Assembly (NCBI GenBank): GCA_002269645.1
Contig: NIVC01001483.1
Coordinates: 1-64,000 of the forward strand
Direction: 5' to 3'
DNA: 64,000 nucleotides
DNA from: Macrostomum lignano
Lineage: Eukaryota
Part shown: one piece after another, positions 3,838 through 35,897 of the stretch
Layout: every line of letters begins with the position of its first letter
Position numbering within the stretch: the first letter of the stretch is position 1
Program-made: the position numbers and the translations under genes
Notes under the pieces: generated by a model
The model's database searches: none
Seen by the model: only the letters and a program-made list of their open reading frames with translations
Told to the model about the DNA's origin: nothing

Positions 3838-6800
3838 CCTTGAGCATGGAATCTCAGCAATTCCCCATTGAGCCATGAAATCTCAGCAACTCCCCATTGA
3901 GCCATGGCATCTCAGCAACTCCCCATTGAGCCATGGCATCTCAGCAACTCCCCATTGAGCCATGGCATCTCAGCAACTCCCCATTGAGCCATGGCATCTC
4001 AGCAACTCCCCTTGAGCCATGGCATCTCAGCAACTCCCCATTGAGCCATGGCATCTCAGCAACTCCCCTTAAGCTTTGTCATCTCAGCAACTCCCCATTG
4101 AGCCATGGCATCTCAGCAACTCCCCTTGAGCCATGGCATCTCAGCAACTCCCCATTGAGCCATGGCATCTCAGCAACTCCCCTTAAGCTTTGTCATCTCA
4201 GCAACTCCCCATTGAGCCATGGCATCTCAGCAACTCCCCTTGAGCCATGGCATCTCAGCAACTCCCCATTGAGCCATGGCATCTCAGCAACTCCCCTTAA
4301 GCTTTGTCATCTCAGCAACTCCCCATTGAGCCATGGCATCTCAGCAACTCCCCTTAAGCCTTGTCATCTCAGCAACTCCCCCATTGAGCCATGGCATCTC
4401 AGCAACTCCCCATTGAGCCATGGCATCTCAGCAACTCCCCTTAAGCCTTGTCATCTCAGCAACTCCCCATTGAGCCATGGCATCTCAGCAACTCCCCTTA
4501 AGCCTTGTCATCTCAGCAACTCCCATTGAGCCATGGCATCTCAGCAACTCCCCTTGAGCCATGGCATCTCAGCAACTCCCCATTGAGCCATGGCATCTCA
4601 GCAACTCCCCTTAAGCTTTGTCATCTCAGCAACTCCCCTTAAGCCTAGTCATCTCAGCAACTACCCTTGAGCCATGACATCGATCAGCAACTCCCCATTG
4701 AGCCATGGCATCTCAGCAACTCCCCATTGAGCCATGGCATCTCAGCAACTACCCTTAAGCTTTGTCATCTCAGCAACTCCCCATTGAGCCATGGCATCTC
4801 AGCAACTCCCCTTAAGCTTTGTCATCTCAGCAACTCCCCCATTGAGCCATGGCATCTCAGCAACTCCCCTTAAGCTTTGTCATCTCAGCAACTCCCCATT
4901 GAGCCATGGCATCAGCAACTCCCCTTAAGCATTGTCATCTCAGCAACTCCCCTTGAGCCATGGCATCTCAGCAACTCCCCTTAAGCCTTGTCATCTCAGC
5001 ATCTCCCCTTAAGCCATGTCATCTCAGCAACTCCCCTTAAGCCATGTCATCTCAGCAACTCCCCTTGAGCCATGGCATCTCAGCAACTCCCCATTGAGCC
5101 ATGGCATCTCAGCAACTCCCCTTAAGCTTTGTCATCTCAGCAACTCCCCATTGAGCCATGGCATCTCAGCAACTCCCCTTGAGCCATGGCATCTCAGCAA
5201 CTCCCATTGAGCCATGGCATCTCAGCAACTCCCCTTAAGCTTTGTCATCTCAGCAACTCCCCATTGAGCCATGGCATCTCAGCAACTCCCCTTAAGCCTT
5301 GTCATCTCAGCAACTCCCCCATTGAGCCATGGCATCTCAGCAACTACCCCATTGAGCCATGGCATCTCAGCAACTCCCCATTGAGCCATGGCATCTCAGC
5401 AACTCCCCATTGAGCCATGGCATCTCAGCAACTCCCCTTAAGCCTTGTCATCTCAGCAACTCCCCATTGAGCCATGGCATCTCAGCAACTCCCCTTGAGC
5501 CATGGCATCTCAGCAACTCCCCATTGAGCCATGGCATCTCAGCAACTCCCCTTAAGCTTTGTCATCTCAGCAACTCCCCTTAAGCCTAGTCATCTCAGCA
5601 ACTACCCTTGAGCCATGACATCGATCAGCAACTCCCCTTAAGCTTTGTCATCTCAGCAACTCCCCATTGAGCCATGGCATCTCAGCAACTCCCCTTAAGC
5701 CTTGTCATCTCAGCAACTCCCCCATTGAGCCATGGCATCTCAGCAACTACCCCATTGAGCCATGGCATCTCAGCAACTCCCCATTGAGCCATGGCATCTC
5801 AGCAACTCCCCTTAAGCTTTGTCATCTCAGCAACTCCCCATTGAGCCATGGCATCAGCAACTCCCCTTAAGCATTGTCATCTCAGCAACTCCCCTTGAGC
5901 CATGGCATCTCAGCAACTCCCCTTAAGCCTTGTCATCTCAGCAACTCCCCTTAAGCCTTGTCATCTCAGCATCTCCCCTTAAGCCATGTCATCTCAGCAA
6001 CTCCCCTTAAGCCATGTCATCTCAGCAACTCCCCATTGAGCCATGGCATCTCAGCAACTCCCCTTAAGCCTTGTCATCTCAGCAACTCCCCTTAAGCCAT
6101 GTCATCTCAGCAACTCCCCCTTGAGCCATGGCATCTCAGCAACTCCCCCATTGAGCCAAGGCATCTCAGAAACTCCCCATTGAGCCATGGCATCTCAGCA
6201 ACTCCCCATTGAGCCATGGCATCTCAGCAACTCCCCATTGAGCCATGGCATCTCAGCAACTCCCCATTGAGCCATGGCATCTCAGCAACTCCCCTTAAGC
6301 CTATAGTCATCTCAGCAACTACCCTTGAGCCATGGCATCTCAACAACTCCCCTTAAGCATTGTCATCTCAGCAACTCCCCTTGAGCCATGGCATCTCAGC
6401 AACTCCCCTTAAGCCTTGTCATCTCAGCAACTCCCCTTAAGCCTTGTCATCTCAGCATCTCCCCTTAAGCCATGTCATCGCAGCAACTCCGCTTAAGCCT
6501 TGTCATCTCAGCAACTCACCTTAAGCCTTGTCATCTCAGCAACTCCCCTTAAGCCATGTCATCTCAGCAACTCCCCTTAAGCCTTGTCATCTCAGCAACT
6601 CCCCCATTGAGCCATGGCATCTCAGCAACTACCCTTGATCCATGGCATCTCAGCAACTCCCCATTGAGCCATGGCATCTCAGCAACTCCCCTTAAGCTTT
6701 GTCATCTCAGCAACTCCCCATTGAGCCATGGCATCTCAGCAACTCCCCTTAAGCCTTGTCATCTCAGCAACTCCCCCATTGAGCCATGGCATCTCAGCAA

Positions 6801-9800
6801 CTACCCCATTGAGCCATGGCATCTCAGCAACTCCCCTTAAGCCTTGTCATCTCAGCAACTCCCCATTGAGCCATGGCATCTCAGCAACTCCCCTTAAGCC
6901 TTGTCATCTCAGCAACTCCCCATTGAGCCATGGCATCTCAGCAACTCCCCTTGAGCCATGGCATCTCAGCAACTCCCCATTGAGCCATGGCATCTCAGCA
7001 ACTCCCCTTAAGCTTTGTCATCTCAGCAACTCCCCTTAAGCCTAGTCATCTCAGCAACTACCCTTGAGCCATGACATCGATCAGCAACTCCCCATTGAGC
7101 CATGGCATCTCAGCAACTCCCCATTGAGCCATGGCATCTCAGCAACTACCCTTAAGCTTTGTCATCTCAGCAACTCCCCATTGAGCCATGGCATCTCAGC
7201 AACTCCCCTTAAGCTTTGTCATCTCAGCAACTCCCCATTGAGCCATGGCATCAGCAACTCCCCTTAAGCATTGTCATCTCAGCAACTCCCCTTGAGCCAT
7301 GGCATCTCAGCAACTCCCCTTAAGCCTTGTCATCTCAGCATCTCCCCTTAAGCCATGTCATCTCAGCAACTCCCCTTAAGCCATGTCATCTCAGCAACTC
7401 CCCTTGAGCCATGGCATCTCAGCAACTCCCCATTGAGCCATGGCATCTCAGCAACTCCCCTTAAGCTTTGTCATCTCAGCAACTCCCCATTGAGCCATGG
7501 CATCTCAGCAACTCCCCTTGAGCCATGGCATCTCAGCAACTCCCCATTGAGCCATGGCATCTCAGCAACTCCCCTTAAGCTTTGTCATCTCAGCAACTCC
7601 CCATTGAGCCATGGCATCTCAGCAACTCCCCTTAAGCCTTGTCATCTCAGCAACTCCCCCATTGAGCCATGGCATCTCAGCAACTACCCCATTGAGCCAT
7701 GGCATCTCAGCAACTCCCCATTGAGCCATGGCATCTCAGCAACTCCCCATTGAGCCATGGCATCTCAGCAACTCCCCTTAAGCCTTGTCATCTCAGCAAC
7801 TCCCCATTGAGCCATGGCATCTCAGCAACTCCCCTTGAGCCATGGCATCTCAGCAACTCCCCATTGAGCCATGGCATCTCAGCAACTCCCCTTAAGCTTT
7901 GTCATCTCAGCAACTCCCCTTAAGCCTAGTCATCTCAGCAACTACCCTTGAGCCATGACATCGATCAGCAACTCCCCTTAAGCTTTGTCATCTCAGCAAC
8001 TCCCCATTGAGCCATGGCATCTCAGCAACTCCCCTTAAGCCTTGTCATCTCAGCAACTCCCCCATTGAGCCATGGCATCTCAGCAACTACCCCATTGAGC
8101 CATGGCATCTCAGCAACTCCCCATTGAGCCATGGCATCTCAGCAACTCCCCTTAAGCTTTGTCATCTCAGCAACTCCCCATTGAGCCATGGCATCAGCAA
8201 CTCCCCTTAAGCATTGTCATCTCAGCAACTCCCCTTGAGCCATGGCATCTCAGCAACTCCCTTAAGCCTTGTCATCTCAGCAACTCCCCTTAAGCCTTGT
8301 CATCTCAGCATCTCCCCTTAAGCCATGTCATCTCAGCAACTCCCCTTAAGCCATGTCATCTCAGCAACTCCCCATTGAGCCATGGCATCTCAGCAACTCC
8401 CCTTAAGCCTTGTCATCTCAGCAACTCCCCTTAAGCCATGTCATCTCAGCAACTCCCCTTGAGCCATGGCATCTCAGCAACTCCCCATTGAGCCAAGGCA
8501 TCTCAGAAACTCCCCATTGAGCCATGGCATCTCAGCAACTCCCCATTGAGCCATGGCATCTCAGCAACTCCCCATTGAGCCATGGCATCTCAGCAACTCC
8601 CCATTGAGCCATGGCATCTCAGCAACTCCCCTTAAGCCTATAGTCATCTCAGCAACTACCCTTGAGCCATGGCATCTCAACAACTCCCCTTAAGCATTGT
8701 CATCTCAGCAACTCCCCTTGAGCCATGCATCTCAGCAACTCCCCTTAAGCCTTGTCATCTCAGCAACTCCCCTTAAGCCTTGTCATCTCAGCATCTCCCC
8801 TTAAGCCATGTCATCGCAGCAACTCCGCTTAAGCCTTGTCATCTCAGCAACTCACCTTAAGCCTTGTCATCTCAGCAACTCCCCTTAAGCCATGTCATCT
8901 CAGCAACTCCCCTTAAGCCTTGTCATCTCAGCAACTCCCCCATTGAGCCATGGCATCTCAGCAACTACCCTTGATCCATGGCATCTCAGCAACTCCCCAT
9001 TGAGCCATGGCATCTCAGCAACTCCCCTTAAGCCTATAGTCATCTCAGCAACTACCCTTGAGCCATGGCATCTCAGCAACTCCCCTTAAGCATTGTCATC
9101 TCAGCAACTCCCCTTGAGCCATGGCATCTCAGCAACTCCCCTTAAGCCTTGTCATCTCAGCAACTCCCCTTAAGCCTTGTCATCTCAGCATCTCCCCTTA
9201 AGCCATGTCATCTCAGCAACTCCCCTTAAGCCATGGCATCTCAGCAACTCCCCATTGAGCCATGGCATCTCAGCAACTCCCCTTAAGCCTTGTCATCTCA
9301 GCAACTCCCCTTAAGACATGTCATCTCAGCAACTCCCCCTTGAGCCATGGCATCTCATCAACTCCCCCATTGAGCCAAGGCATCTCAGCAACTCCCCATT
9401 GAGCCATGGCATCTCAGCAACTACCCTTGATCCATGGCATCTCAGCAACTCCCCATTGAGCCATGGCATCTCAGCAACTCCCCTTAAGCCTATAGTCATC
9501 TCAGCAACTACCCTTGAGCCATGGCATCTCAGCAACTCCCCTTAAGCATTGTCATCTCAGCAACTCCCCTTGAGCCATGGCATCTCAGCAACTCCCCTTA
9601 AGCCTTGTCATCTCAGCAACTCCCCTTAAGCCTTGTCATCTCAGCATCTCCCCTTAAGCCATGTCATCTCAGCAACTCTCCTTAAGCCATGGCATCTCAG
9701 CAACTCCCCATTGAGCCATGGCATCTCAGCAACTCCCCTTAAGCCTTGTCATCTCAGCAACTCCCCTTAAGACATGTCATCTCAGCAACTCCCCTTGAGC

Positions 9801-10008
9801 CATGGCATCTCATCAACTCCCCCATTGAGCCAAGGCATCTCAGCAACTCCCCATTGAGCCATGGCATCTCAGAAACTCCCCATTGAGCCATGGCATCTCA
9901 GCAACTCCCCATTGAGCCATGGCATCTCAGCAACTCCCCATTGAGCCATGGCATCTCAGCAACTCCCCCATTGAGCCATGGCATCTCAGCAACTCCCCCA
10001 TGGCATCC
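3838..10008 (+). repeat. 28-30 bp minisatellite (~210 units) with higher-order duplications
   Basis: Unit GAGCCATGGCATCTCAGCAACTCCCCATT alternates with AAGC(C/T)TTGTCATCTCAGCAACTCCCC(A/-)TT. Rare variants recur at an offset of about 2.34 kb. Confidence 0.97.
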
Positions 10009-10468
10009 CAGCTTTGAGTAAAAACCACTTCCTTTATGTAAATATACACGTACATATACATGTCGATGCTGCAGAAACTCATGTGTGTAGTTCTACGAGT
10101 ATTTACTAGAATCTCTTGTACTGCCAAGCACGTGACGTTCAGCTCCAAAACTTCCCGTGAGAAAGCAGCAGGCCTGAGATCTGTGAGCCGCTTCTCACTG
10201 CTGCCACTACTGAGGGCTCTGCGGCCTCACTCTGGCGGCCTCAGCAACTCGGCTGCTGTCACGATCGCAGCTCCACAGTGAAACGTGACTCGGACAGCCA
10301 CATCGGACCTGCAACTGCAGCAGAGCCTCAGCTGAGGCCGCGCCACTCAATCTGGCGAGATCCCACGCCCTCCACGCATTCCAGCAGCAGCTCGGGTGGA
10401 TAAATGCCGACTCGCAATGCCTGCTCAAATTTGCAACTCAAAGTGGCCGCTCCAATCAGCGACTCCCA

Positions 10469-11278
10469 TTGGCGACTCAGCAAATGCAGCACCGCCAGCT
10501 ACTCGCTGCCTGCCTCGCCGCAGCCACTGCAGCTCTGGTGCTCACCGGCGCCTCTGCTCAGTGTCCCGGACACGGCTCTGCACCTGACAGAGGCGTCACC
10601 CCACCTGTGGACGGCCTCGTGGCTGCGTTCGATTTCAGGAGGGGCCTGCACAACCTGGTGGACCCGCGCGCCTTTGCCATCGAGGACCAGTTTGGCGTGG
10701 AGAGGTCGGCAGAGGACGGGGCCTGCTTCAAGCAGAATTCAAGTGCCAGATACAGGGAGTTCTACAATGTCGGAGCTCCCATGGCATTCAATGAGTCGAT
10801 CTGGAACTCAGCAGAGTGGACCATGTACTTCAGGCTGACTCGGAGCAGCGGCAGCTGGGTTCGTTTTCTGTCGGTTCCGAGCGACCATTTGCGCCCGGAT
10901 GGGGTGCTAAACGTTTATGCTGTCATTGATCAATATTCTAGAAACAGGTTTAGATTTTATGTTGGGCAACATGACCTTCGAAGCCGGCATTATAACGAGC
11001 ACCACTTCTACGGATCGGGCTGTGCTGGCAGCTGGTGCGACATTCGGCTGGCAATGAAGAATCACATTTTGGATTCTCCTGCCATCGGATGGCCGCTGAG
11101 TTCTGATTATCAGAAGTTTACTGATTTTGTTAATGAACTGGGACTGCAGCAGCTGCAGATTGGAAATCTTTATCCATCTTCTGGTTCCCAGCGGCTCTGC
11201 GTGAGGTGCTTCGGGGTCGCCCGCAGGCAGCTGAGCGCCCATGAGGTGCGGCAGGCGATGTCGGCTTTCTGCCCCTGA
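10469..11278 (+). CDS. Secreted lectin-like protein A (269 aa): signal peptide plus ConA/LamG-like jelly-roll domain, intronless
   Basis: Hydrophobic signal (LLAACLAAATAALVLTGASA). GLVAAFDF and FGVARRQLSAHEV resemble the N- and C-terminal motifs of LamG/ConA-like domains. Clear paralogue at 18951-20639. Intact ORF with GC-rich codons. Confidence 0.8.
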   Translation: MATQQMQHRQLLAACLAAATAALVLTGASAQCPGHGSAPDRGVTPPVDGLVAAFDFRRGLHNLVDPRAFAIEDQFGVERSAEDGACFKQNSSARYREFYNVGAPMAFNESIWNSAEWTMYFRLTRSSGSWVRFLSVPSDHLRPDGVLNVYAVIDQYSRNRFRFYVGQHDLRSRHYNEHHFYGSGCAGSWCDIRLAMKNHILDSPAIGWPLSSDYQKFTDFVNELGLQQLQIGNLYPSSGSQRLCVRCFGVARRQLSAHEVRQAMSAFCP

Positions 11279-11989
11279 GACTGCGGCTGCAAGCAGTGGG
11301 CCTGGCCACTAAAATGCATTACGTAGTCGTTTTGTCTTCTTCCGAAAGTCTGTCGGTTTGTCTGTCTGTCCAGTCTGGTTTCTGTCTGTTTATCTTGACA
11401 AATTAAATGGTGCCTCAGAGCCAAGTTGGTGACGCTCTTCCTGAGTGTCCCGAATGTACGAAATTACAATATACGATCTTAGCTGCATATACAGCATTGC
11501 AAAAACTTTGATTGCCCTCAGCAATGATACCGGTGTAGCTGATGAAGTTCAAGGAAGCTAGGCACACTTGTGACCTTGGCCATTGTTCAAAATGTCTATG
11601 GTAATTACGATAAGGTAATGACATTCAAGCAATGACCGGAAAACGAACGCTGAGATTAAAAAAGTAGTCTATGTTTGTAAGTGTGGACTTCGCCCCCACA
11701 CCCCATTCGCCCTTGCCACTCGGATCCTGATGGTCAAATTGAATAATGAAGCTAGCTGGAAGTGGCGATAGCCGCTCATGTCTATGGCCATTACCATGAA
11801 TTCTCACTTCCTGACAACCCCCATTAACTTAAACCCTCGCTTCGTATTACATGTAGCTGCATTAATTGAATTGTCTAAGGCCGAAACAGACGGAAATGTA
11901 AATGACGATGCTTACACTTCATGTCAATGGCCAGTCCCATAGAATGCATTGGTCAATCAGTTGTCTATGGCTAAAATTGGCGGCCACTG

Positions 11990-12146
11990 GCCATTTTTCG
12001 CCCAGATGAGGTGCTGCCACCAAATTAATACCTTTATGCTGGCATTAATAAAACTTCTGGGGACAGGTTTGAATTTTATGTTGGGGAACATGACCTTGCG
12101 ATCCAACATTATAACGAGCACTACTTCGATGAATTTGGCTGTGACG
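11990..12146 (+). pseudogene. Lectin-like paralogue C, left half (variable core of the ConA-like domain)
   Basis: Translates RPDEVL..*..LYAGINKTSGDRFEFYVGEHDLAIQHYNEHYFDEFGCD, homologous to gene A RPDGVLNVYAVIDQYSRNRFRFYVGQHDLRSRHYNEHHFYGSGCA. In-frame TAA, and no 5' part. Confidence 0.8.
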
Positions 12147-13569
12147 CTTCCGACTGGCGCGCAGGGTCCGCCCTCTTGTGGGATGTCGGCTCCTCCGCGG
12201 GATTGAGTTGCCAGCACTCTCCAGAGGCGGCAGAAGGGGCGGCTTTCGCACTCCTGGCCGTTCCTCCGCTTTGCGCTTGAGAAAAGCTTTGTAGCGAGCA
12301 ATGCTACGGGCCTTCTTTTTAGAGGTCTGAGGTCCGCCGTCCTGTTGTCCAGCCACTTCGGTATTGTCCTGAGTGGCGACAGAAGCTGACTAAGAGTCAC
12401 CGGAGGTCCCGGTGTTGCGAATGTCCGGCTGGGCGGCGATACCAACCGCAGTTGGCGCTCCAGCAGCCTCGGACGTGTTGCAAGTAAATGAATACTCCAT
12501 GAGTCGCTGAAAGGTGAATGGGGACTAGAGGTGAGAAGCTGCTGGGCCGAAACCCCAAACCCAACAGCCAGCCAAAATATAGCGACCCGGGGTGCTTAGG
12601 CCCTTACCGGCCCGACCGCTAGCAACCGAGAAACTACCCGGCTAAGAGCCCGGCTTGGAGAGACCATACGCTCGTAGGCCGAACCAAAGGAACATCAGCG
12701 CGGTACTACACTGGTAGGCTGTCCGCATCCTGTTAAGGTCAGAGGGTGATACCTGTTCTTCAGAGCCGTGGCCAGAGGTACCTGATACGCACAGGTTCAC
12801 TTCCGGACGGAGCCCGTACCCAAATCGGCCAAGACAGAAGCCAAGGCCACGGATGGGGTGCAGGTGTAGGATACAATTCCGATAATTCTGTGCTGTGGTC
12901 GGTCTGCACTTTGCGGCCGATCTGGTCTGATGGCGTTGGTTGCTCTTTGTGGCAAAGTCATCCAGTTCATGCCAGGTCTTCATGTTTGGATTTTCCAGCT
13001 TTTTGCTTTCTTCTGATTGAAGAACGAGCTTAGCCAGACCATATTCAAGCTCTCTTGCCATGTTCGAAGTTACTCACCTTGTTAGTTTGTCCAGCCGATA
13101 CCATGTTGGCCTGCGCTCGTGAAGAGGGTCGCTGCTCCTCGAACGATGTTTGAGGTCCAGTCACCTTGCACCCGAAATCACACATTGGAAAGCGCGCGTT
13201 TCTGTGGGTGCATTTTTATGCCTCCTGTGTTCCACAGGTGCCATGCAGTCTCATTTAGTAAGATTAGTAGGTTTCCTTATTCTCATGGTGAAACACTGAT
13301 GCCGGTGCCTTGCAAGGTCACATCCCAGCTCGATGACGCTTTCTTTACTATCTGTCCGAGTCTCGCTGAGCCCAGGTTTGCCCGCTGCACGTTCCACATC
13401 GCGATTCTCACTTTCTTCTGGTTCCAGATTCTTTGCGCAGCTTCTAAACGTTGTTTGTTCCTTTATTTTACGGTGTTTCTCTCTCTCTTCGCGTTTCGAC
13501 GCCTGTTCCTTGCCCTTCTCTGCTCACTGGTTCCCGGTCCAGGTTTGCAATTTGGTTCGTATTCGCGAT

Positions 13570-13821
13570 CCGCTAACTCTTCCGCTAACTCTTCCGCTAA
13601 CTCTTCCGCTAACTCTTCCGCTAACTCTTCCGCTAACTCTTCCGCTAACTCTTCCGCTAACTCTTCCGCTAACTCTTCCGCTAACTCTTCCGCTAACTCT
13701 TCCGCTAACTCTTCCGCTAACTCTTCCGCTAACTCTTCCGCTAACTCTTCCGCTAACTCTTCCGCTAACTCTTCCGCTAACTCTTCCGCTAACTCTTCCG
13801 CTAACTCTTCCGCTAACTCTT
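13570..13821. repeat. Perfect 12-bp tandem repeat (CCGCTAACTCTT)x21
   Basis: 21 identical units counted. Confidence 0.97.
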
Positions 13822-15212
13822 CAGTCTTCCGTGTGCCGCGTCGCTGCCACCCGATAGGCTTTCCTCTAACCCTAAGCCGTCGGTCATATCGTCCTCTGAT
13901 GTCGGTGTGTCGTCTTCGCCAGAAGGGGCTCTGTGGCTATCGTCCAGCTGGTCGTTAAGTACTTCTCTTCTTCTGTGTGAGTTGATCGGTCTTCCAGGAC
14001 AATGTCAGAAATTTCGTTAATCCTGTCCTGTCCCGTCCTTGATAGCGTCTCTGCCTTTCGCACAAATTTTCCAGTTCTCTTATTAGACTTCGACAGACAA
14101 TTTCGCGCGGTAGCTAATAAGTGAGCAGATTCAGCAGGTATCAAGTAGGTTGAGCAATGGCTAGAGTTACGATCATGCGCTTCCGGCAGGTTGCAGTGAT
14201 GAGCCATTGTACAATAATTCTTAATAAGCAATAAAATTCTACTCTTCCGGCTAAAGCAATTTCAATAATATCAGTCGGCACATATGGCTGGATTTGACAG
14301 GCCTTTTTGCCTCAATTTTAGCGGACAGCACCTGGGATCAAGTCAACAGGTCATTTGCTGTGCCACATGACAAGGCTGGTTCCTATAGCCAAGCCACAAC
14401 GTCTCAAACATCTGGTTCTGTTGACGCCAGCACCCTACTAGCATTGCGTGATGCTTTCTAGTCCGCTCTCTGTCACGCTGTAGGCTCGTATGACTGCCTA
14501 GCAGACATCGCAGTCCAGAGTTTTCATCGTGGACTCCGTCTGACGAGGCAACCAGACAGCGGTTAAAATCAATATCGCCTGCATATGCACCGATCCGTCT
14601 AGCTTAACTACGCGGTTTATTATTTCTATTTTTATAAATATTTTTATAGCTAGTAAATTAACGAACACAATAATCAACACATTGCACTGCAACTCAGCCT
14701 TCCGCCACACGTCGTCCTCCAGCTCTGGTTCTTAGCCGCTCATGTCTTCTTGGCTAGATGGTTGGAAGACACTGCCGATCTTCCATGAAATCCTTCCTGA
14801 GACTCCGGAAAGTCAGGGAACCAGTATAGGCCACAAACAAGTGCGCTGTTCCGAATTACCAATAGGTCTTGTGTAACTTTAAAACTCTTCTGTTCGACCA
14901 CAAGTTTGTTCGTCCGCCAGCTGGAAATTTGTTCTTCTTTTTACCCGTTTATATTTATATTGTAAAAACTGTCTCCTGCACAATGAACTCCTGCTGAACT
15001 CCATGGTCTTGCTGTCCTTGGGCTGATCGGCTGATTGTTGATGTGGGTACTGTTGTGATCGTTGATGCAGCTGCTGGTGGTGGGGTGTGCCTAGCTACGT
15101 CGGGTGCCTTGGACAAAGGCTAGCGTCCACAACGTTGGGGCCTACTAAACTTTGGTCCCCTCGCTCCAGGCTCACATTGGGTCCTCTCGTTGCCGTCCAG
15201 CCTCGTCCAGGT

Positions 15213-15320
15213 GACACGACCAAGTGACACGACCAGGTACGACACGACCAGGTGACACGACCAGGTACGACACGACCAAGTGACGCGACCAGGTACGACA
15301 CGACCAGGTGATACGACCTA
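15213..15320. repeat. Short 13-15 bp tandem repeat (GACACGACCAGGT-type), ~7 units
   Basis: Directly visible; may lie in the 5' UTR of the adjacent LINE remnant. Confidence 0.8.
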
Positions 15321-16216
15321 GCCTATCCCCGTTCCTATACTTATGAGCAATTTCTTATGGCTCATAATTTATATTGAGATCGAATAGTAGACACGTTATT
15401 TCAGTTTCAAGTTTTGTAACTAAATTGAACTTATAGTATCGATACTTTCTAAAACAAAAAAAACTTTTTCAACCTTTTTTAAAACTCTTCAACTAGTAAA
15501 AGTTTCGAAAAAATTAACTGCAAGAATTTCAAAATGCTTTTCAAGCCAAAGAGCTGCAGATAATTGAAAATTAAGGTTTTATGTATCGAAGTTACGAGCT
15601 ATTTTCTATTTTATTTTTTAACTAAATTAATTCAGTGGAGAAAAGCCCTGGTCGGTTAAACTGATTGATTGAACTGATGGTTGTATTAAAGTTGTACTTT
15701 TGTGCCCAATTTTTAACTGATTGCAATGAGCAATTTAACTGAGGGATAGGATGCCCCTCAGCCCAATGAAGCCCAATGATCATGGGATCTCGTGCTTGGG
15801 TTTCAAAAATAGCTGAAGTATAATTGCAAAAATTTAAATTAAACTCACAACAATTATTACAAACAATTTGTCATTGGTTAGTTGTCTATATGATTTCTAC
15901 CTATATGATTCTATATGATATTGAACGAAGCTTAGTTTACTTATACATGTAGGACTTTATAACGGCATTTTCTATGCCTGAAGCCCTCCCGCTTGGAAAA
16001 TGTTGTGCCGATGCCTTTTACTCGTAGTTAAAACCATCCCAGAAGTCGGAAAAAATTAGTTAAATTGAAATTTACGAGTTATACCCGAATTTGTCTACTG
16101 CTGCAGTAGCGCGCAAAGATTTTTTAGCAGTAGTGTGACCCAAGTAGGAAATTCGAGATTTAGGAATTTAGTAAGATTCAGTAAGTTACGAGCATAGTTT
16201 ATTTTTTAATTATAAA

Positions 16217-17139
16217 TACGTTTATTAATTTCCCGGAAAAGTTCACTTCTGGTGGTTGCATCTGCACGAAATTTTACCTGCAGCAACTGCAGTCTGTAAT
16301 CACTTCTCAACATAACTTCCTGTGGCGCCTTGCTGCAGCGCTGCGTCGGAGGAAAATGGCCGCCATCATTTTGCCGATGCTGCGATTGCGACGAAACTTG
16401 AGAGGAGCATCTTCGTCGTTGATAACCCACTGCCGACTCTGCTCCTTGGTCTCATGGGTCGTAGAAGTAGACCGAAGGTTCTTTGCCAGTGAGGATGTTA
16501 TCCACCAACTTTCAGCGGCCTCCGTCAAACCTTGGCCGCCATGAGGTCGGCGAGCTCAACGCGGGCTTGCATCTGGTCAGGGCTGAGCTGGTGGGGCACC
16601 CAGCGAGCGGACAGCTTCGTCATTTCAAGGTGCTGGTGCAGGATCTTAATGATGGTGGAATCCGACACCCCGACGAGCTGCTCCAACCAGCCAATCGCCA
16701 CTCACCGATCTTCGTCTAAATGGCGTCGAACAGCAGCAACGACTCCGTCGGACACAGTCGAACTCGGCCGCCAATCACGAGGATCGTCGTCCAGAGTGGC
16801 CGAGCCGCAGCGGAAGCGTGCAAACCACTCATACAGCATCGACTGGGATGGCGCTTGATCCTGAAGAGCCTCACGCAGCGTCTGGAGTCATGTGGCTGCA
16901 GAGCTGCCCAGCCGAAACTGGACCGGGATTGCCACTCGCCTGTCGCGGTCAGTCATCTGTGGCAGCAGGGCGGCACGTTTTCGGCCAAACTTTGGACATT
17001 GCAGCGCATCGTTGCGACCGATTGAGTTGAAATTTTACAAGCGAACGTTGAACATCCAACTCCAACTGCTGGTTAAGTTTCGTTTGATTTTCGCATTTTT
17101 AAGCTGCATTTTCCGGGAACTTAATAAGCACCGCTCGTA
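16217..17139 (-). mobile_element. Internally deleted mariner (DD34D-type) transposon
   Basis: The minus strand encodes an HTH region, LSARWVPHQLSPDQ (WVPHEL motif), VDNILTGKE (first catalytic D mutated), YDP-ETKEQSRQW, GKMM and a C-terminal GSYVEK*. Imperfect TIRs: TTATTAA(T/G)TTCCCGGAAAA at about 16222-16240 and its complement at about 17109-17128. Confidence 0.85.
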
Positions 17140-17227
17140 GCCTTAGAAAGAGTCGGAATACAGAATAGAATTATCTTTCCTTTCCTTTCCTTGCATTTCC
17201 TTAATCATATCAACAAGCACGACTCCA

Positions 17228-17469
17228 ACGGCAGCTGGTCCGACATTCAACTGGCAAAAAGAACCGCATTTTGGATTCTCCTGCCATCGGACGGTCGCTG
17301 GGCGTTCAATATCGGAACTGGACTGATGGGACTCATGAAGTGGGACTGCAGCAGCTGCAGCTCGGAAATTATTATTTACTTCTGTGTGAGGTGCTTCGGA
17401 GTCACCCGCAGGCAGCTGAGCGCCGATGAGGTGCGGCAAGCGATGTCGGCCTTCTGCCCCCGAGTATAA
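17228..17469 (+). pseudogene. Lectin-like paralogue C, right half (C-terminus of the ConA-like domain)
   Basis: GSWSDIQLA-NRILDSPAIGRSLGVQYRNWTDGTHEVGLQQLQLGNY-CVRCFGVTRRQLSADEVRQAMSAFCP with two frameshifts. It resumes exactly where 11990-12146 stops. Confidence 0.85.
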
Positions 17470-17701
17470 GGCTAGAATTTGCGTCACTGAGCATCCGGAT
17501 CCAGCACCGGCTGCAACCGCGATAACAGCATCCGGTTGAGCAGCCTCGCAGCGCAGGACTGAAGGCAGAGGCCTCTGTGCTCATTCAGGATTGTGGTAGC
17601 TACCCGGCTTCTTTGGAACGTGACGACCCATACCAATGGGAAACTTGGCGGTTTATGCCGCTATACACTGTGCACCTTGTGTGAGCGTGTGTATGAGCAC
17701 A

Positions 17702-17870
17702 GGGGTTATAGCCTAATGGTTCGATCGTTGGAATCACGACGGAAAGGTCGGGGGTTCGATTCTCGACACACTCGGAACAATTTGTGTCCTTGAGCAAGAC
17801 ACTTAACTCTGCATTGCTTCAGTTAGTCCAGCTGTAAAATGGGTGCCAGCATTAGCTGGGGTAATTGAGG
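17702..17870 (+). mobile_element. tRNA-derived SINE with CORE-like central domain
   Basis: A-box TAGCCTAATGG (~17709) and B-box GGTTCGATTC (~17753). These are followed by TGTGTCCTTGAGCAAGACACTTAAC...CTGTAAAATGGG, which resembles the CORE domain of MIR-like SINEs. Confidence 0.75.
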
Positions 17871-18320
17871 GTGAGTGTGGCGCCCCCCCCCCTCAGTCCT
17901 TGGACTGAACAGCCGTACGCAGCCTGCAGATGCGCTGCGCAATGGCTGCGGCTGAGCTGTCGGTTGCACAACTGCCTAGCAATGCCCACATTTGCATATG
18001 TGCTGTGTACGAGTACCCTATAACCGACTGCTCCGCTCTCCTGGTGTTATGACGCTCTGGCAAAGAAAGAACGCCTTGCCTTAGCCTAACAAGTTTCCCA
18101 TAAAGAATTACTTAAGCGGGCGGCTTACCAGAGGGGGGCAGAAGGCTCTACTGGCTAAGCCCTCAACCAAGCCACAGGGCCAGCCAATCAGAACCCCGCC
18201 CGGGGCAGGGTGCAGCACCCGGCACGCACGCCAACCCCCCCCAGCCCCCCAAAGTGCACCGTGCCCTGCCAAACCAAGGGCACATGCACTACACCTGTAT
18301 GCAGCTAGTAAGATCGTATA

Positions 18321-18788
18321 CTTGGCAACAGTCAAAAGTTCCAACCCTCCAAGCGAAATAAAAAATTCCTCACTTATTGCGACAACTTTTCACCCACAAT
18401 TCAACTCTCAAGTTACGCAACTGAGTCACCGCGAGGAAGGGAAAATTAATAGAATCAATAGCTCGTACTATTGATGAACGCCAGTCGCACAAAGTCATAA
18501 CGCGCTTAGTAACGCGTGTGGGATCCCCTCGCACGCAGAAAGTCCTAGGGAAGCTGCTGCCAAGCGTTTCAATGGCATGACGGAGCTCCGCAACATGCTG
18601 CGGTGGATTCTCTTATCGACTGCTGCGTTTTAGGAAGTCCCAGACATGCTCGATGGGATTCATGTGTGGGGACCATTAAGCAGACCCAAGCCGACCCCAG
18701 TGGCAGTAAGCTTTGCGCGTACCGTAATTACTCGCAATAAGTGAAAAAATCATCTCGCTTCGTGGTTAGAGCTTATGACTGTTGCTGA
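18321..18788. mobile_element. Non-autonomous Tc1-like element (MITE), same family as 55615-57131
   Basis: Degenerate TIRs CTTGGCAACAGTCAAAAGTT / GCTTATGACTGTTGCTGA flanked by TA. The interior is colinear with 55615-55725 and 56600-57131. Confidence 0.8.
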
Positions 18789-18950
18789 TAATGCATTGTA
18801 TTTGATTTATCGATAACTGATTGGGTACATTCAAAGACTTTGGAGAAACACCACCAAGGCATGATAGCCATATAACCACCATCAAACTGAACTGATTCGT
18901 CAAGCCATACGGTAAGAATGAGTCAAAATCTTCAGCATATTCGCAGCTCC

Positions 18951-20639
18951 TCAGGGGCAGAAGGTCGACATCGCCTGACGCACTTCGTCGGAGCTCAGCC
19001 GCCTGCGGGCGACTCCGAAGCACCTCAGGCAGAGTTTCCGAGCTACAGAATAAAACGGCGACCCGAATCCAACACGGAGCTGCTGCAGTGCCAGTGCATC
19101 CGCATCGAATGTCGAGTTCCAATATTGAACTCTCAGCGGCTCTCTGATGGCAGGAGAATTCAAAATGCCATCCTTGATTGCCAGCCGAATGTCGCACCAG
19201 TTGGCAGCACAGCCCGATCCGTTGAACTCGTGGTTGTTGTTATGCACGGTGAAATGCGTTGAGTTCCCGAGGTCGCGTTGCAGAACGTTTAAAACGAACT
19301 GCTCAGCACTGGAGGAATAGAGCTCAGCACGGAGGCTTGAGTACGAATTCGGATCGGAGTGCTCGCTGCGCACAGACAGAAACTCGACGCCACTTTTATT
19401 GCCTACGGTAAGCCTAAAGTACATTGTGTACTCTGATGTACTGAGAATCGACTCATTGAATGCCACGGGAGCTCCAACATTGTAGAACTCCCTGTATCTG
19501 GCACTTGAATTCACCTTGAAGCAGGCCCCGTCCTCTGCCGACCTCTCCACGCCGAACTGGTCCTCGATGGCGAAGGTGCGCGGGTCCAACAGGTTGTGCA
19601 GGCCCCTCCTGAAATCGAACGCAGCCACGAGGCCGTCCACCTGCGGCGGCGGCGACGCAGACGGCGGTGGCGGGGAGTTGCCGTCCGACGCCTCCGTCTT
19701 GCACACGAACCTGTGCCTGCTGTGGCACCTGTCGCTGCGCAGTCGACCAGCTGACAGCGTGACGCAGTTCACAGTCCAGTCCGCACTGTCCGGGTGTCCA
19801 GTCTCCCATGCGGGCAGCTTGTTGTCGTGTTTCCCTGAGAAATCCGTCCACTGGTAGCAGAGCTCGCGACCCGCACTGTCAGGGAAGCAGGGGTTCAGCT
19901 TGATGAGGCCGAGCCACACCGAGTCGAGCAGCTCTGCCGACTCGCAGCTGTCGATTCCGAAGCTGAGCTTGTTCACAAAGTCCAGCTCAGACTGGGTGAG
20001 CACCGACGCCAGCTGCGACGAGTTTCGCTGGCAGTAGAAGTTGGCCTCGTTGAAGTTGGCCTCAAACTGCGGCATCACGTAGCACTGCTCGTCGTGCAGC
20101 CACCAGCCGCTGGGACATCGGCCCTTCGACCGCCACCACCAGTCGACGAGACTGCTGGATTTCGCGCTCAACTTGCACACAAACGGGTGCCGCTCGTGAT
20201 ACAGCGAGTTGAGCCACCACTCACCGTCACTTCGGATCAGAGGCTTGTGAACGCTGTCCAGCTGAGAGAAGTTGTGTCTCTCGAAGCTCCCTACGCCGCC
20301 GCCGTCCGTCCACCTGTAGCTTGTAGGGTCGGCCAGACGGTCGAGGTCGGTGCCGAACAAACCGATCCAGGCGTCTCTGCAGTGAGACAGTCGGCCTACC
20401 AGTCGGTTCTCTTGCTCACTTTGGATGGACGCGAGCTGAGCCCGGTGAGACAGACACGTCTGTTCGGCCTGAAACCAGTAGTTCGGCTCGCTGAACCACT
20501 TGTAGCATGAGTGAGCTCGGTGTGTCCAGCCGTGTCCGGGACACTGAGCAGAGGCGGCGCCGGTGAGCAGCAGAGCTGCAGTGGCTGCGGCGAGGCAGGC
20601 AGCGAGTAGCTGGCGGTGCTGCATTTGCTGAGTCGCCAA
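18951..20639 (-). CDS. Secreted lectin B (562 aa): signal peptide, two C-type lectin domains, Pro-rich linker, ConA/LamG-like domain; intronless
   Basis: CTLD1 has C-Y-x-W, AEQTC, LASI, WIGL and FVCK. CTLD2 has CPSGW, EANFYC, LASV, VWLGL, W..GHPD..NCV and C..RHRFVCK. Linker PPPPSASPPP. The C-terminal domain is shared with gene A. Confidence 0.9.
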   Translation of the reverse strand: MATQQMQHRQLLAACLAAATAALLLTGAASAQCPGHGWTHRAHSCYKWFSEPNYWFQAEQTCLSHRAQLASIQSEQENRLVGRLSHCRDAWIGLFGTDLDRLADPTSYRWTDGGGVGSFERHNFSQLDSVHKPLIRSDGEWWLNSLYHERHPFVCKLSAKSSSLVDWWWRSKGRCPSGWWLHDEQCYVMPQFEANFNEANFYCQRNSSQLASVLTQSELDFVNKLSFGIDSCESAELLDSVWLGLIKLNPCFPDSAGRELCYQWTDFSGKHDNKLPAWETGHPDSADWTVNCVTLSAGRLRSDRCHSRHRFVCKTEASDGNSPPPPSASPPPQVDGLVAAFDFRRGLHNLLDPRTFAIEDQFGVERSAEDGACFKVNSSARYREFYNVGAPVAFNESILSTSEYTMYFRLTVGNKSGVEFLSVRSEHSDPNSYSSLRAELYSSSAEQFVLNVLQRDLGNSTHFTVHNNNHEFNGSGCAANWCDIRLAIKDGILNSPAIREPLRVQYWNSTFDADALALQQLRVGFGSPFYSVARKLCLRCFGVARRRLSSDEVRQAMSTFCP

Positions 20640-21094
20640 TGGGAGTCGCTGATTGGAGCGGCCACTTTGAGTAGCAAATTTGAGCAGGCATTTCGAGTCG
20701 GCATTTATCCACCCGAGCTGCTGCTGGAATGCGTGGAGGGCGTGGAATCTCGCCAGATTGAGTGGCGCGGCCTCAGCTGAGGCTCTGCTGCAGTTGCAGG
20801 TCCGATGTGGCTGTCCGAGTCACGTCTCACTGTGGAGCTGCGATCGTGACAGCAGCCGAGTTGCTGAGGCCGCCAGAGTGAGGCCGCAGAGCCCTCAGTA
20901 GTGGCAGCCGTGTGAGAAGCGGCTCACAGATCTCAGGTCTGCTGCTTTCTCACGGGAAGTTTTGGAGCTGAACGTCACGGGCTTGAGAGTGCAGGAGATT
21001 CAAGTACATAAAGCTACACATGTTTCCTTTTACATGCCAGTTTTTTGCTGCATCAACATGTACGAGCGTATAAAGACTGCGGCTTCTATGCAAA

Positions 21095-21431
21095 GCTCAG
21101 ATGCCATGGCTCAATGGGGGAGTTGCTGAGATGCCATGGCTCAGTGGGGAGTTGCTGAGATGCCATGGCTCAGTGGGGAGTTGCTGAGATGCCATGGCTC
21201 AGTGGGGAGTTGCTGAGATGCCATGGCTCAGTGGGGAGTTGCTGAGATGCCATGGCTCAAGGGGGGAGTTGCTGAGATGCCATGGCTCAATGGGGAGTTG
21301 CTGAGATGCCATGGCTCAATGGGAGGGGGGTTGCTGAGATGCCATGGCTCAATGGGGAGTTGCTGAGATGCCATGGCTCAATGGGGAGTTGCTGAGATGC
21401 CATGGCTCAATGGGGGAGTTGCTGAGATGCC
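21095..21431 (-). repeat. Inverted copy of the 29-bp minisatellite (~11 units), upstream of lectin B
   Basis: GGGGAGTTGCTGAGATGCCATGGCTCAAT is the reverse complement of the 3838-10008 unit, with the same array/unique junction CATGGCATC(CC/TG)AGCTTTG. Confidence 0.95.
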
Positions 21432-21451
21432 AATTGGCCAGGTCAGGCCAG

Positions 21452-21520
21452 GTCGGTCCAGGCGTCTCTGCAGCGAGACAGTCGGTCTACCAGTCGGTTC
21501 TCTGGCTCACTTTGGATTGA
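21452..21520 (-). pseudogene. Isolated C-type lectin domain fragment (copy D)
   Basis: Reads SIQSEPENRLVDRLSRCRDAWTD versus gene B SIQSEQENRLVGRLSHCRDAWIG. Nucleotide match to about 20365-20430. Confidence 0.75.
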
Positions 21521-21995
21521 CTCCGAAGAGAGATTCAAAAGTAATCTTTTCAGCGATTTTTTTGTTAACGACCTATTCAGAACATGTAGTAATCAAGTAA
21601 ACTTTTCTTTGCCTGCGCTGCAGCTAATAAAGACACGCCAGCGTCAGGGGCCTCTGTTCCTACCTGGACTGGGCAACAAAATCCGGCTGCAGAACAGCAC
21701 AAAAAGTGTCCTTGGCTCAGTTTCAACTTTTCATCCAATTTTTTATGACAGGCAATAGAGAAAGTGGCGCAGCTGAGGGTGGGGGGCATGCGGTGTCTCG
21801 GAAATGTCATCGAGAGCTGCTGTGCAGTGTGCAGGCGAAATCTTGGCTTCGGCACGGGAACACGCGGCTTTAGAGAAATTTCGAATTTGAAATGGCAAGC
21901 GGCCGGTGCGAGTCCCGCCGCGCACTCGATCCGGGCTGGCTGATGAAGAAGCGAAGAGGCTGGCCGCCCCCGCATGGAAGTTGGGCCGAGGAGCA

Positions 21996-22710: not shown

Positions 22711-24827
<2,117 letters not shown>

Positions 24828-25253: not shown

Positions 25254-25745
<492 letters not shown>

Positions 25746-26144
25746 TCTATCCCTACCCAACAAAGATTATTTATGCCTTGGCGACAACCAGGACGGCAGG
25801 CTCGGATAATCAAATCAGCCGTCTTGTGGTCACCGGCCAGCCAGGCAGAGTGCAGCAGTGGCAAGATGAGGCCGCTCAGCATCCTCGCATAGGCTATTAA
25901 TTTCATCCTCCGGCCCTCTGAGCCTGACTCGATCCCAATTTTCTATCACACGCTGTCATCGAGTTTGAGTCAAGTTTGTTATGGGTGCATCTGCCGTGCA
26001 GCAAACGTTTGCCTTTGCTCAAAGCAGTGGCCTTTCATTGCGTGCACAAGTGATTAATTAGACTTGAAAATTCGTTTCCAAATTTAACCTGTAGAAATTG
26101 TCTCTATGAGGGTATCAAGATCTCACGAATTGCGCCAGGATATC

Positions 26145-27293
26145 TATAGTTGGGTTTCAGGATGTCTATAGTTGGGTGTCAGGTCTATAGTTGGGTTTTA
26201 GGATGTCTATAGTTGGGTGTCAGGTCTATAGTTGGGTTTCTGGATGTCTATAGTTGAGTGTCAGGCTGTCTATAGTTGAGTGTCAAGATGTCTATAGTTG
26301 AGTGTCAGGATGTCTATAGTTGACTGTCAGGATGTCTATAGTCGATCGTGTCAGGATGTCTATAGTTGGATTTCAGGATGTCTATAGTTGGATGTCAGGA
26401 TGTCTATGTTGACTGTCAGGATGTCTATAGTTGAGTGTCAGGATGTCTATAGTTGAGTGTCAGGCTGTATATAGTTGAGTGTCAGGATGTCTATAGTTGA
26501 GTGTCAGGATGTCTATAGTTGAGTGTCAGGATGTCTATAGTTGAGTGTCAGGATGTCTATATTGAGTGTCAGGATGTCTATAGTTGAGTGTCAGGATGTC
26601 TATAGTTAAGTGTCAGGATGTCTATAGTTGAGTGTCAGGGTGTCTATAGTTGAGTGTCAGCATGTCTATAGTTGAGTGTCAGGGTGTCTATAGTTGAGTG
26701 TCAGGATGTCTATAGTTGAGTGTCAGAATGTCTATAGTTGAGTGTCAGGATGTCTATAGTTGAGTGTCAGAATGTCTATATTGAGTGTCAGGATGTCTAA
26801 AGTTGAGTGTCAGGATGTCTATAGTTGAGTGTCAGGATGTCTATAGTTGAGTGTCAGGATGTCTATAGTTGAGTGTCAGGATGTCTATAGTTGAGTGTCA
26901 GGATGTCTATAGTTGAGTGTCAGGATGTCTATAGTTGAGTGTCAGGATGTCTATAGTTGAGTGTCAGGATGTCTATAGTTGAGTGTCAGGATGTCTATAG
27001 TTGAGTGTCAGGATGTCTATGTTGAGTGTCAGGATGTCTATATTGAGTGTCAGGGTGTCTATGTTGAGTGTCAGGATGTCTATATTGAGTGTCAGGATGT
27101 CTAATTGAGTGTCAGGATGTCTAGTTGAGTGTCAGGATGTCTATATTGAGTGTCAGGATGTCTATATTGAGTGTCAGGATGTCTATATTGAGTGTCATGA
27201 TGTCTATAGTTGAGTGTCAGGATGTCTATATTGAGTGTCAGGATGTCTATAGTTGAGTGTCAGGATGTCTATATTGAGTGTCAGGATGTCTAT
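26145..27293. repeat. 22-bp minisatellite GTCTATAGTTGAGTGTCAGGAT, ~52 units
   Basis: Directly visible; lies between the converging 3' ends of MRLC and APBB. Confidence 0.97.
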
Positions 27294-27798
27294 AAATGTA
27301 TATCTAGGAGATTGAAATTTAGGGCTACCTGAAAACATCAGTATGGGACATGCATATTGAGTTGCATATCTATTGGCCGGTTGCAGTCATTGGCCAATGA
27401 AATATTGATTAAAATAGCCTTACATCTGCATGTATAGATAAAGTATTCATAATGGCACGGATGACACTGCATCAGTAAAGCGGCACTATTCAGCCATTTG
27501 AAACTCAAATCATAACTAATAAAACCGATGGCTATGCAAGAAGTGGCACTCATGATGGAGCCGCTGGACTATTGGACCAACAGGCGACTGAAGGGCACCG
27601 CATCAGCCAGCGACAACAGCGATGACTACGCGGCAGGTGCTTCATCATCGGTGCCAATCGATGCTCAAGGATGCTGCAGAGATGACAGGAGCGGCAGAAG
27701 GATCGTCTGCTCAGCTCTGGTGCTGCTGCTCCTGCTCACTCTGCTGCTGCTGTTACTGCTGCAGAGGTCAGTAGAGGCCCGAATTAGCGGCGGCAACA

Positions 27799-35025: not shown

Positions 35026-35038
35026 TGGATAGATAGAC

Positions 35039-35101
<63 letters not shown>

Positions 35102-35145
35102 CAGATAGATAGATAGATAGGTAGTAGATAGTTAGATAGATAGAC

Positions 35146-35184
<39 letters not shown>

Positions 35185-35286
35185 CAGATAGATAGATAGA
35201 CAGATAGATAGATAGACAGATAGATAGATAGACAGATAGATAGATAGATGGATAGATAGATAGATAGATAGACAGATAGATAGATG

Positions 35287-35319
<33 letters not shown>

Positions 35320-35344
35320 GTAGATAGATAGATAGATAGATAGG

Positions 35345-35389
<45 letters not shown>

Positions 35390-35437
35390 GGATAGATAGA
35401 TAGACAGATAGATAGATAGACAGATAGATAGATAGAC

Positions 35438-35495
<58 letters not shown>

Positions 35496-35496
35496 G

Positions 35497-35527
<31 letters not shown>

Positions 35528-35536
35528 GTAGATAGG

Positions 35537-35581
<45 letters not shown>

Positions 35582-35582
35582 G

Positions 35583-35623
<41 letters not shown>

Positions 35624-35644
35624 GTAGATAGATAGATAGATAGG

Positions 35645-35721
<77 letters not shown>

Positions 35722-35722
35722 G

Positions 35723-35769
<47 letters not shown>

Positions 35770-35770
35770 G

Positions 35771-35811
<41 letters not shown>

Positions 35812-35812
35812 G

Positions 35813-35897
<85 letters not shown>

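Follow-up and report, generated by a model that had tools for sequence, protein, structure and literature searches.

Multigene families shaped by localised gene conversion have sharp tract boundaries, and their binding regions are thought to be protected by selection for diversity. Localised conversion is described for the early chorion ErA genes of the silk moth and for loci of the major histocompatibility complex (MHC) (Hibner et al. 1991; Doxiadis et al. 2006, as cited in PMC2576457). Simple repeats beside conversion tracts have been suggested as initiators in other families. In flatworms, the SmPoMuc genes of Schistosoma mansoni are dispersed and encode secreted mucin-like proteins; parts of these genes are homogenised by gene conversion, their pseudogenes recombine with family members and the number of their tandem repeats varies; they have many exons, and much of the variation arises through repeated exons and splicing (PMC2576457). 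Here we analyse a window of minisatellite-rich animal DNA, the whole 64-kb stretch studied, from the free-living flatworm Macrostomum lignano. It holds two intact genes in inverted orientation, A and B, and a decayed pseudo-copy, C. Judged from their sequences, all three are members of an intronless family that is restricted to M. lignano, with predicted secreted products; the relatives of A and B among protein database matches all come from this animal. We consider it probable that the family consists of old, dispersed paralogues that have been repeatedly overwritten by ectopic (non-allelic), probably GC-biased, gene conversion, which spared the cores of the variable domain or shuffled them in patches. 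Searches of the literature on M. lignano C-type lectins, on the locus tags of the family and on gene conversion in Macrostomum found no description of these genes; the family is previously undescribed, and the process itself, partial concerted evolution, is of a known kind.

By analogy, the behaviour of this family matches the partial concerted evolution of multigene families, and the nearest flatworm parallel would be SmPoMuc. Both are multi-locus flatworm families of secreted mucin-like proteins in which near-identical parts stand beside different parts and repeat number varies, here from 1 to 14 linker units. However, there is no sequence relationship between the two: the M. lignano genes have a single exon, and their variable part is a folded, probably all-beta domain of ~225 residues. 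With the chorion ErA and MHC loci the family shares homogenised tracts beside diverging parts and simple repeats that adjoin the tracts (here a 28-bp satellite at A and at B), although the family, the organism and the domain are all different and, in M. lignano, two complete lectin domains and the 5′ untranslated region (UTR) are homogenised over dispersed loci.

The comparison of A with B carries much of the evidence (coordinates of all features are collected in Table 1). Over an upstream region and the signal peptide, positions 10129-10577 at A match 20981-20528 at B at 441 of 449 bp (98.2%), with two small indels, whereas the adjoining stretch further upstream (10011-10128 versus 21096-20982) is clearly homologous yet agrees at only 67 of 112 aligned bases (59.8%). 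An earlier inspection of the letters, the sequence-only reading, had pointed to both features, and placed the near-identical promoter and signal-peptide block within ~12 bp of where we find it. Because the public gene model of a further paralogue, F, extends at least 132 nucleotides (nt) upstream of its ATG, part of the shared upstream block is 5′ UTR. Within the C-terminal domain, A and B are highly similar over ~78 codons at the start (VDGLV..MYFRLT) and 27 at the end (LCVRCFG..FCP), again as that reading had described, and the middle is divergent with indels. The divergence and the indels of the middle were correctly seen, but it does not form one block: a conserved island of 24 codons (GSGCAGSWCDIRLAMK..SPA), with 7 non-synonymous and 0 synonymous differences between A and B, divides it into core 1 and core 2. 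The claim that the core is more AT-rich in gene A proved marginal, with a GC content in core 1 and core 2 of 0.49 and 0.45 in A and of 0.52 and 0.52 in B.

Synonymous divergence changes abruptly along the two genes. Counted by the method of Nei and Gojobori, synonymous differences over sites between A and B are 0/26 in the signal peptide, 2.5/31 and 7.7/21 in the framework segments fw1a and fw1b, 24.7/37 in core 1, 0/17 in the island, 12.5/27 in core 2 and 5/20 in the end. The sequence-only reading had set its proposal of gene conversion against a uniform synonymous divergence along the gene; what we find instead is strong heterogeneity over segments (chi-square 54, 6 degrees of freedom, p = 7.5e-10), which persists without the poorly alignable core 1 (p = 2e-5). 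When only codons for the same amino acid are considered, the contrast between framework and core remains (Fisher p 1e-6 to 5e-6 for the pairs A-E, F-E and E-B, and 0.0045 for A-B; E is another paralogue). Protein constraint alone, with a framework under purifying selection, loops free to vary and a uniform age throughout, would account for a ratio of non-synonymous to synonymous divergence (dN/dS) that is low in the framework (0.06-0.3) and higher in the core (0.3-0.8, where dS is saturated). Such an explanation, which the synonymous-site and non-coding comparisons refute, has a probability close to nil in our judgement, as synonymous divergence differs more than 10-fold between adjacent segments, the non-coding upstream sequence also steps from 60% to 98% identity and the trees of different segments are in conflict. 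The synonymous heterogeneity, the non-coding step and the switching of nearest neighbours described below thus argue for non-reciprocal exchange between copies, by gene conversion or recombination, rather than for protein constraint alone.

Three more paralogues, D, E and F, lie at separate loci, each with different neighbouring genes. The full-length layout comprises a signal peptide, two C-type lectin domains (CTLD1 and CTLD2), a mucin-like (TSAPDGGV)n linker and a C-terminal domain of ~225 residues that is all-beta in structural models. The linker repeat, of 8 residues or 24 nt, is present in 1 unit in A, 7 in D, 8 in E and 14 in F, and B has a degenerate Pro/Ser version; the DNA of D, on contig L001, holds one unit more than the deposited protein P0004. 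Owing to its premature stop, the predicted product of E is without the LCxRCFG..FCP end.

These dispersed copies share a nearly identical 5′ module. Over the ~1040 nt from position -99, counted from the start codon, to the end of CTLD2, which include 5′ UTR, signal peptide and both lectin domains, B, a second version of B on the public contig L003, D, E and F differ by 1.0-1.7%. The two lectin domains are ~98.5% identical at the nucleotide level in D, E and F, and their synonymous divergence (pS) is 0.022-0.027 among B, D and E and 0.022 between B and its L003 version. The boundaries of the shared sequence depend on the pair at one end only: homology starts at -99 (E and F), -175 (D) or -350 (A with B), with unrelated flanks beyond among the dispersed loci, and it ends 1-3 nt past the stop codon in every pair. 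As the stretch from -350 to -175 is common to A and B only, at least one tract reflects a local exchange within the inverted pair. The proposal, also made from the letters, of conversion between the inverted copies therefore stands for this stretch, but homogenisation is family-wide and extends to at least three other contigs.

The copies form a mosaic within the C-terminal domain. All five, D included, are 84-100% identical over domain codons 0-45, and from codon 46 to the stop D drops to ~45% against all others. The remaining four group differently from block to block: A, F and E are 98-100% identical over codons 56-87, where B is at 62-84%; F resembles B (73-78%) over codons 120-143; A, F, E and B are all at least 87% identical over codons 144-167; F, E and B are alike (81-88%) and A differs over codons 168-191; and only A and F are alike (80%) over codons 192-207. 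This switching of the nearest relative, seen in sliding identities, is accompanied by a significant pairwise homoplasy index (PHI) test (p = 0.003), and in Sawyer-type permutations the longest shared runs are significant for F-E (p <= 1e-4), A-E (4e-4) and A-B (1.3e-3). Sites informative for quartets among A, F, E and B number 29, too few for a sharp breakpoint map.

Could such genes instead be recent whole-gene duplicates, followed by targeted hypermutation or extreme positive selection limited to the core, and no conversion at all? The 5′ module, 1.0-1.7% diverged and star-like, looks as it would after a recent burst of duplication, and in some small segments non-synonymous changes outnumber synonymous ones. 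We nevertheless hold this to be unlikely. The flanks are unrelated right outside -99 or -175 and the stop codon, synonymous sites in the cores are saturated even in codons whose amino acid is unchanged, whole blocks are common to different pairs of copies, and the two versions of B (window and L003) show zero differences in core 1 with flanks that differ by 2-4%. Unrelated flanks and the synonymous saturation of the cores and of D's domain imply that the copies are old. Venom and conotoxin superfamilies, with short exon-structured precursors in which extremely conserved signal and 5′ regions stand beside a hypervariable mature region, resemble the M. lignano family in the sharply uneven divergence along one gene. 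Here, however, the variable part is a large beta-sandwich-like domain broken by conserved islands.

Base composition follows the same divisions. GC content at third codon positions (GC3) reaches 0.80 in the lectin domains and 0.83-0.93 at those ends of the C-terminal domain that are homogenised. In the cores it is 0.34-0.66, and the C-terminal end of D, which is unhomogenised, has a value of 0.52. Upstream of the genes GC content is 0.59 in the near-identical block versus 0.36 in the adjoining diverged stretch. The raised GC3 of the homogenised blocks suggests GC-biased conversion.

Pseudo-copy C has the same orientation as gene A and is found 0.7 kb downstream of it; its two pieces match contiguous parts of A. 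It is truncated at its 5′ end, with nothing 5′ of core 1 kept, and its terminal stop codon TGA has changed to CGA. Homology of the spacer between A and C (11282-12000) to the 5′ parts of the genes was not found. The transposase remnants in the insert that splits C have weak Pfam matches to HTH_32, HTH_Tnp_Tc3_2 and Transposase_1, and the same insert contains a perfect 12-bp microsatellite of 21 copies (13569-13822). C is itself a mosaic, as had been noticed from the letters: it is A-like (79%) in core 1, E/B-like and not A-like at the start of core 2 (RVQYRNWT), and A-like again after that.

Cassette systems combine one or a few expression sites with large silent donor arrays, and change takes place within an individual or a clone. 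Chicken immunoglobulin pseudo-V conversion, the variant surface glycoproteins (VSG) of trypanosomes and msp2 of Anaplasma are such systems (as cited in PMC2576457). The M. lignano genes resemble them in segmental non-reciprocal copying that yields mosaic variable regions between conserved framework ends, and the sequence-only reading had drawn that parallel, with pseudogene donors copied into expressed genes, possibly somatically, so as to vary a ligand-facing core. A mosaic pseudo-copy just 0.7 kb downstream of A and the evident short-patch exchange inside the domain speak for it; we nonetheless judge a programmed system of this type very unlikely. The sole pseudo-copy is 5′-truncated, is split by a transposon-bearing insert and differs from each of the intact copies by 21-27%. 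The longest exact matches that it has to any of them measure 15-34 nt, all but one in the conserved framework, and no identical tract of donor length joins C to any intact copy in the variable parts. A profile scan found no domain fragments in the window other than A, B and the two pieces of C, and no extra copies lie within 10 kb of D, E and F; over the same regions there is no donor array. Nor is there a single expression site, since the shared block of upstream sequence and 5′ UTR occurs in all intact copies. The cassette model is thus unsupported: the pseudo-copy is single and decayed, and neither an array of donors nor a tract identical to a donor was seen in these regions. The pattern is evolutionary, germline mosaicism, and does not demonstrate a programmed variation system.

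A complete A-C-B arrangement is also present on L003, the public M. lignano contig that carries BOX15_Mlig019923g2, with an identical A and a B that is 98.8% identical. The window and L003 agree at 99.97% from 10013 to ~17470 and are then 2-4% diverged, by substitutions and many indels, up to 21433; the switch coincides with the 3′ end of pseudo-copy C. Either one of the assemblies changes there between haplotypes or homeologues, or the sequence is a real recombinant. Among the 11 differences in the domain between the window B and the L003 B, each version carries part of the derived states, and no donor-like tract that would indicate micro-conversion was seen. An assembly artefact, in which repeated genes of a very repeat-rich genome have collapsed or been joined into a chimeric consensus, might be suspected in a region packed with satellites, and the fall from 99.97% to ~97% near 17500 may be a haplotype switch in one of the assemblies. 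But A-C-B recurs in an independent contig (A identical, B 98.8%) and thus is not a one-off assembly chimera, each paralogue sits between unique flanking genes, and private substitutions and indels are kept inside the shared module, where collapse would erase them. We therefore regard an artefact as extremely unlikely.

We envision a scenario in which the copies are old duplicates, parts of which have been overwritten again and again by ectopic conversion. A recent, apparently burst-like wave would have homogenised the ~1-kb 5′ module over at least four dispersed loci, and its 3′ ends vary in position but stay in the first third of the C-terminal domain. Exchange at the local scale, between A and its inverted neighbour B, would have produced the tract from -350 to +93, that is, the 449 bp of upstream sequence and signal peptide. 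Older, short patches may have been swapped inside the domain, leaving each copy, C included, a different mosaic. The cores would have escaped homogenisation, probably because they are too divergent to pair and probably also through selection for different binding surfaces. In this scenario the mosaic itself, the uneven synonymous divergence, the limits of the tracts and the contrast in GC are shown by the sequences, and from them we infer conversion as the mechanism, selection on the cores and a lectin-like function in recognition.

Several points weigh against this account of repeated conversion. Variable sites in the 5′ module are nearly all private to one copy; a module so rich in singletons is better explained by a single recent burst than by steady exchange, and some other copy-and-paste spread of the module could also be the source of the singletons. 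Codon-usage selection could produce high GC3 in conserved coding blocks, although the non-coding block shows the same shift. The alignment of core 1 is uncertain (~40-50% nucleotide identity), and "saturated" is there in part a statement about alignment quality; the significance of the heterogeneity survives without core 1. Local values of dN/dS above 1, such as 2.46 for A-F in core 2 and the ratio of 7 to 0 changes for A-B in the island, come from few sites and mosaic sequence and do not establish dN/dS > 1. Finally, our sample of five intact copies (A, B, D, E and F), one pseudo-copy and one relic represents part of the family, without population variation.

The evidence on the fold of the variable domain comes from models. 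The sequence-only reading had called the domain ConA-like, and by sequence profile its membership in a ConA-like or LamG family found no support. No relevant Pfam family matches at E <= 10, and no PDB sequence matches below E = 0.3. A profile search of 1.84 billion representative proteins returned M. lignano proteins only, plus one marginal match (E = 3e-5) to a 2629-residue protein with bacterial-type immunoglobulin and cadherin-like domains, in which the matching repeats are without a Pfam assignment; a word-indexed homologue search with domain alignment added nothing. Two AlphaFold2 models are all-beta, of low confidence (mean predicted local distance difference test, pLDDT, 45 and 49), and the top Foldseek matches of both low-confidence models are exclusively ConA-like jelly rolls (E ~1e-4 to 1e-2, template-modelling (TM) score 0.2-0.6). 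They comprise GH16 glucanases, sialidase lectin and CBM40 modules, galectins, laminin LG domains and the lectin-like subdomain of clostridial neurotoxin binding domains, a resemblance that would be generic fold likeness only and has no bearing on toxicity. The ConA-like label is in this way weakly supported. The motifs GLVAAFDF..G, WTMYFRL and terminal L.VRCFGVARRQLSA.EV, which we take to recall the start, central strand and end of LamG_3-type domains, serve as a lead only.

A more far-reaching proposal is that these genes form a flatworm-specific, secreted recognition repertoire, in which a constant "handle" of two C-type lectin domains presents a hypervariable jelly-roll "head". Selection would maintain the diversity of the head's cores, and conversion in short patches would actively reshuffle them among the dispersed loci, with an immune, microbial or sperm/mate role and perhaps also somatic reshuffling. 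We regard this as doubtful at present. A functional analogy is offered by the fibrinogen-related proteins (FREPs) of the snail Biomphalaria, which combine immunoglobulin superfamily and fibrinogen domains, have a documented anti-parasite role and reportedly undergo somatic diversification, with gene conversion and point mutation invoked as sources of their diversity (PMC12074976). The likeness, of function only, is that of secreted multi-domain lectin-type proteins in an expanded, lineage-specific family; in contrast, the variable module of M. lignano is not a fibrinogen domain, and the M. lignano family is known here from genes alone.

The two intact genes of the window differ in layout. In gene B the signal peptide is followed by two C-type lectin domains, which a short Pro/Ser linker connects to the C-terminal variable domain; the gene matches Pfam Lectin_C (PF00059) in two stretches (E = 2.1e-19), and its protein is 98% identical to BOX15_Mlig019923g2. 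Gene A encodes a signal peptide, one linker unit of 10 residues (SAPDRGVTPP; 10577-10606) and the variable domain of ~225 residues, and Pfam profile comparison found no Lectin_C match in it. The domain of A is nearest to that of F (84% nucleotide identity), and gene A looks like an F-type gene that has lost both lectin domains through an in-frame deletion. Neither the annotation of the public assembly nor the protein database includes gene A.

Table 1. Features of the family in the window and on other contigs. Unprefixed positions refer to the window.
Feature	Position	Strand	Remarks
28-bp satellite, ~216 copies, 6.2 kb	3838-9998		directly 5′ of gene A; Tandem Repeats Finder, self-BLAST
Old diverged part of the A/B inverted duplication	10011-10128	+	GC 0.36; homologous to 21096-20982
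A upstream block	10129-10483	+	5′ UTR and probably promoter; GC 0.59
Gene A	10484-11278	+	intact single-exon open reading frame (ORF), 264 codons + stop
A framework 1 (PVDGLV..MYFRLT)	10604-10840	+	GC3 0.84 (codons 0-45), 0.68 (codons 46-81); codons 46-81 98-100% identical among A, F, E
A core 1	10841-11011	+	57 codons, indels; synonymously saturated vs B, E, D; closest to F (60-93%)
A conserved island GSGCAGSWCDIRLAMKNHILDSPA	11012-11083	+	24 codons; splits the core; A, F, E, B at least 90% identical
A core 2	11084-11194	+	first part: F, E, B alike, A differs; second part: only A, F alike
A C-terminal framework (LCVRCFGVARR..FCP) + stop	11195-11278	+	GC3 0.93
Pseudo-copy C, 5′ piece	11996-12146	+	in-frame stop; 12030-12143 matches A domain nt 308-421 at 79%
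Insert splitting pseudo-copy C, ~5.1 kb	12147-17224		decayed mariner/Tc1-like transposase remnants, minus strand, ~16100-17100
Pseudo-copy C, 3′ piece	17225-17467	+	frameshifted; matches A domain nt 424-676 at 78%, E 74%, B 73%
Gene B	18951-20624	-	single-exon ORF, 557 codons + stop
B core 2	19035-19148	-	from sliding identities
B conserved island	19149-19220	-	counterpart of A 11012-11083
B core 1	19221-19406	-	62 codons; zero differences from L003 version
Family-wide 5′ module in B (-99 to end of CTLD2, ~1040 nt)	19681-20723	-	1.0-1.7% from D, E, F, L003 copies; GC3 ~0.80
B upstream block	20625-20981	-	near-identical partner of 10129-10483
28/29-bp satellite, 11 copies	21095-21432		upstream of gene B; inverted relative to 3838-9998; Tandem Repeats Finder
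CTLD1 relic, 68 bp	21454-21521	-	92.6% identical to B, D, E; just past B's satellite; also in L003 (9065-9140)
Paralogue D	L001:10037-11839		intact
Paralogue E	L002:9449-11296		premature stop (L002:11171) 35 codons before end
Paralogue F	L004:10121-12067		intact 648-aa ORF; annotated as partial 239-aa protein

The 28-bp satellite, whose unit is CCTTGAGCCATGGCATCTCAGCAACTCC, stands upstream of both A and B, and the inverted duplication therefore reaches out to the satellite. Beyond the satellite of B, the short relic is what remains of a further family member. A short dispersed repeat occurs at 18534-18788, just 3′ of gene B, and again at 56750-57130 near the end of the window (83-84% identity). 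Between 24000 and 49000 there is an unusually dense run of unrelated minisatellite arrays with units of 18-32 bp (for example 26136-27294, 29947-30810, 32092-33201, 36473-37505, 38474-39348 and 39709-40657), and long tetranucleotide runs lie at 22730-23545, 25254-25743 and 35028-35970. Ordinary neighbour genes are found at 30731-32050, 40785-41570 and 47206-48030, all on the minus strand; one is an ORF with a PID/PTB domain, and the others are exons of a protein with BAR, RhoGAP and SH3 domains (GRAF/oligophrenin-like).

If old paralogues have indeed been overwritten by ectopic conversion, the family would offer a compact, clean example of partial concerted evolution, in which divergence rises from ~1.5% to saturation within a few dozen codons of one intronless gene, with the tract ends and the GC signature visible, in a laboratory model animal for which transgenesis and RNA interference (RNAi) are available. 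There are practical consequences as well: the 5′ modules are near-identical, so that short-read mapping, RNAi and in situ probes aimed at one member strike all, and the public annotation misses gene A and truncates the ORF of F, which is intact. Knowledge of diversified receptors in flatworms is scant, and an uncharacterised, lineage-restricted lectin-like family with a hypervariable domain is a candidate for non-self or mate recognition in these animals. Should the proposal of a recognition repertoire prove true, Macrostomum lignano, a model of regeneration, would gain an analogue of the FREPs of snails or of the 185/333 family of sea urchins.

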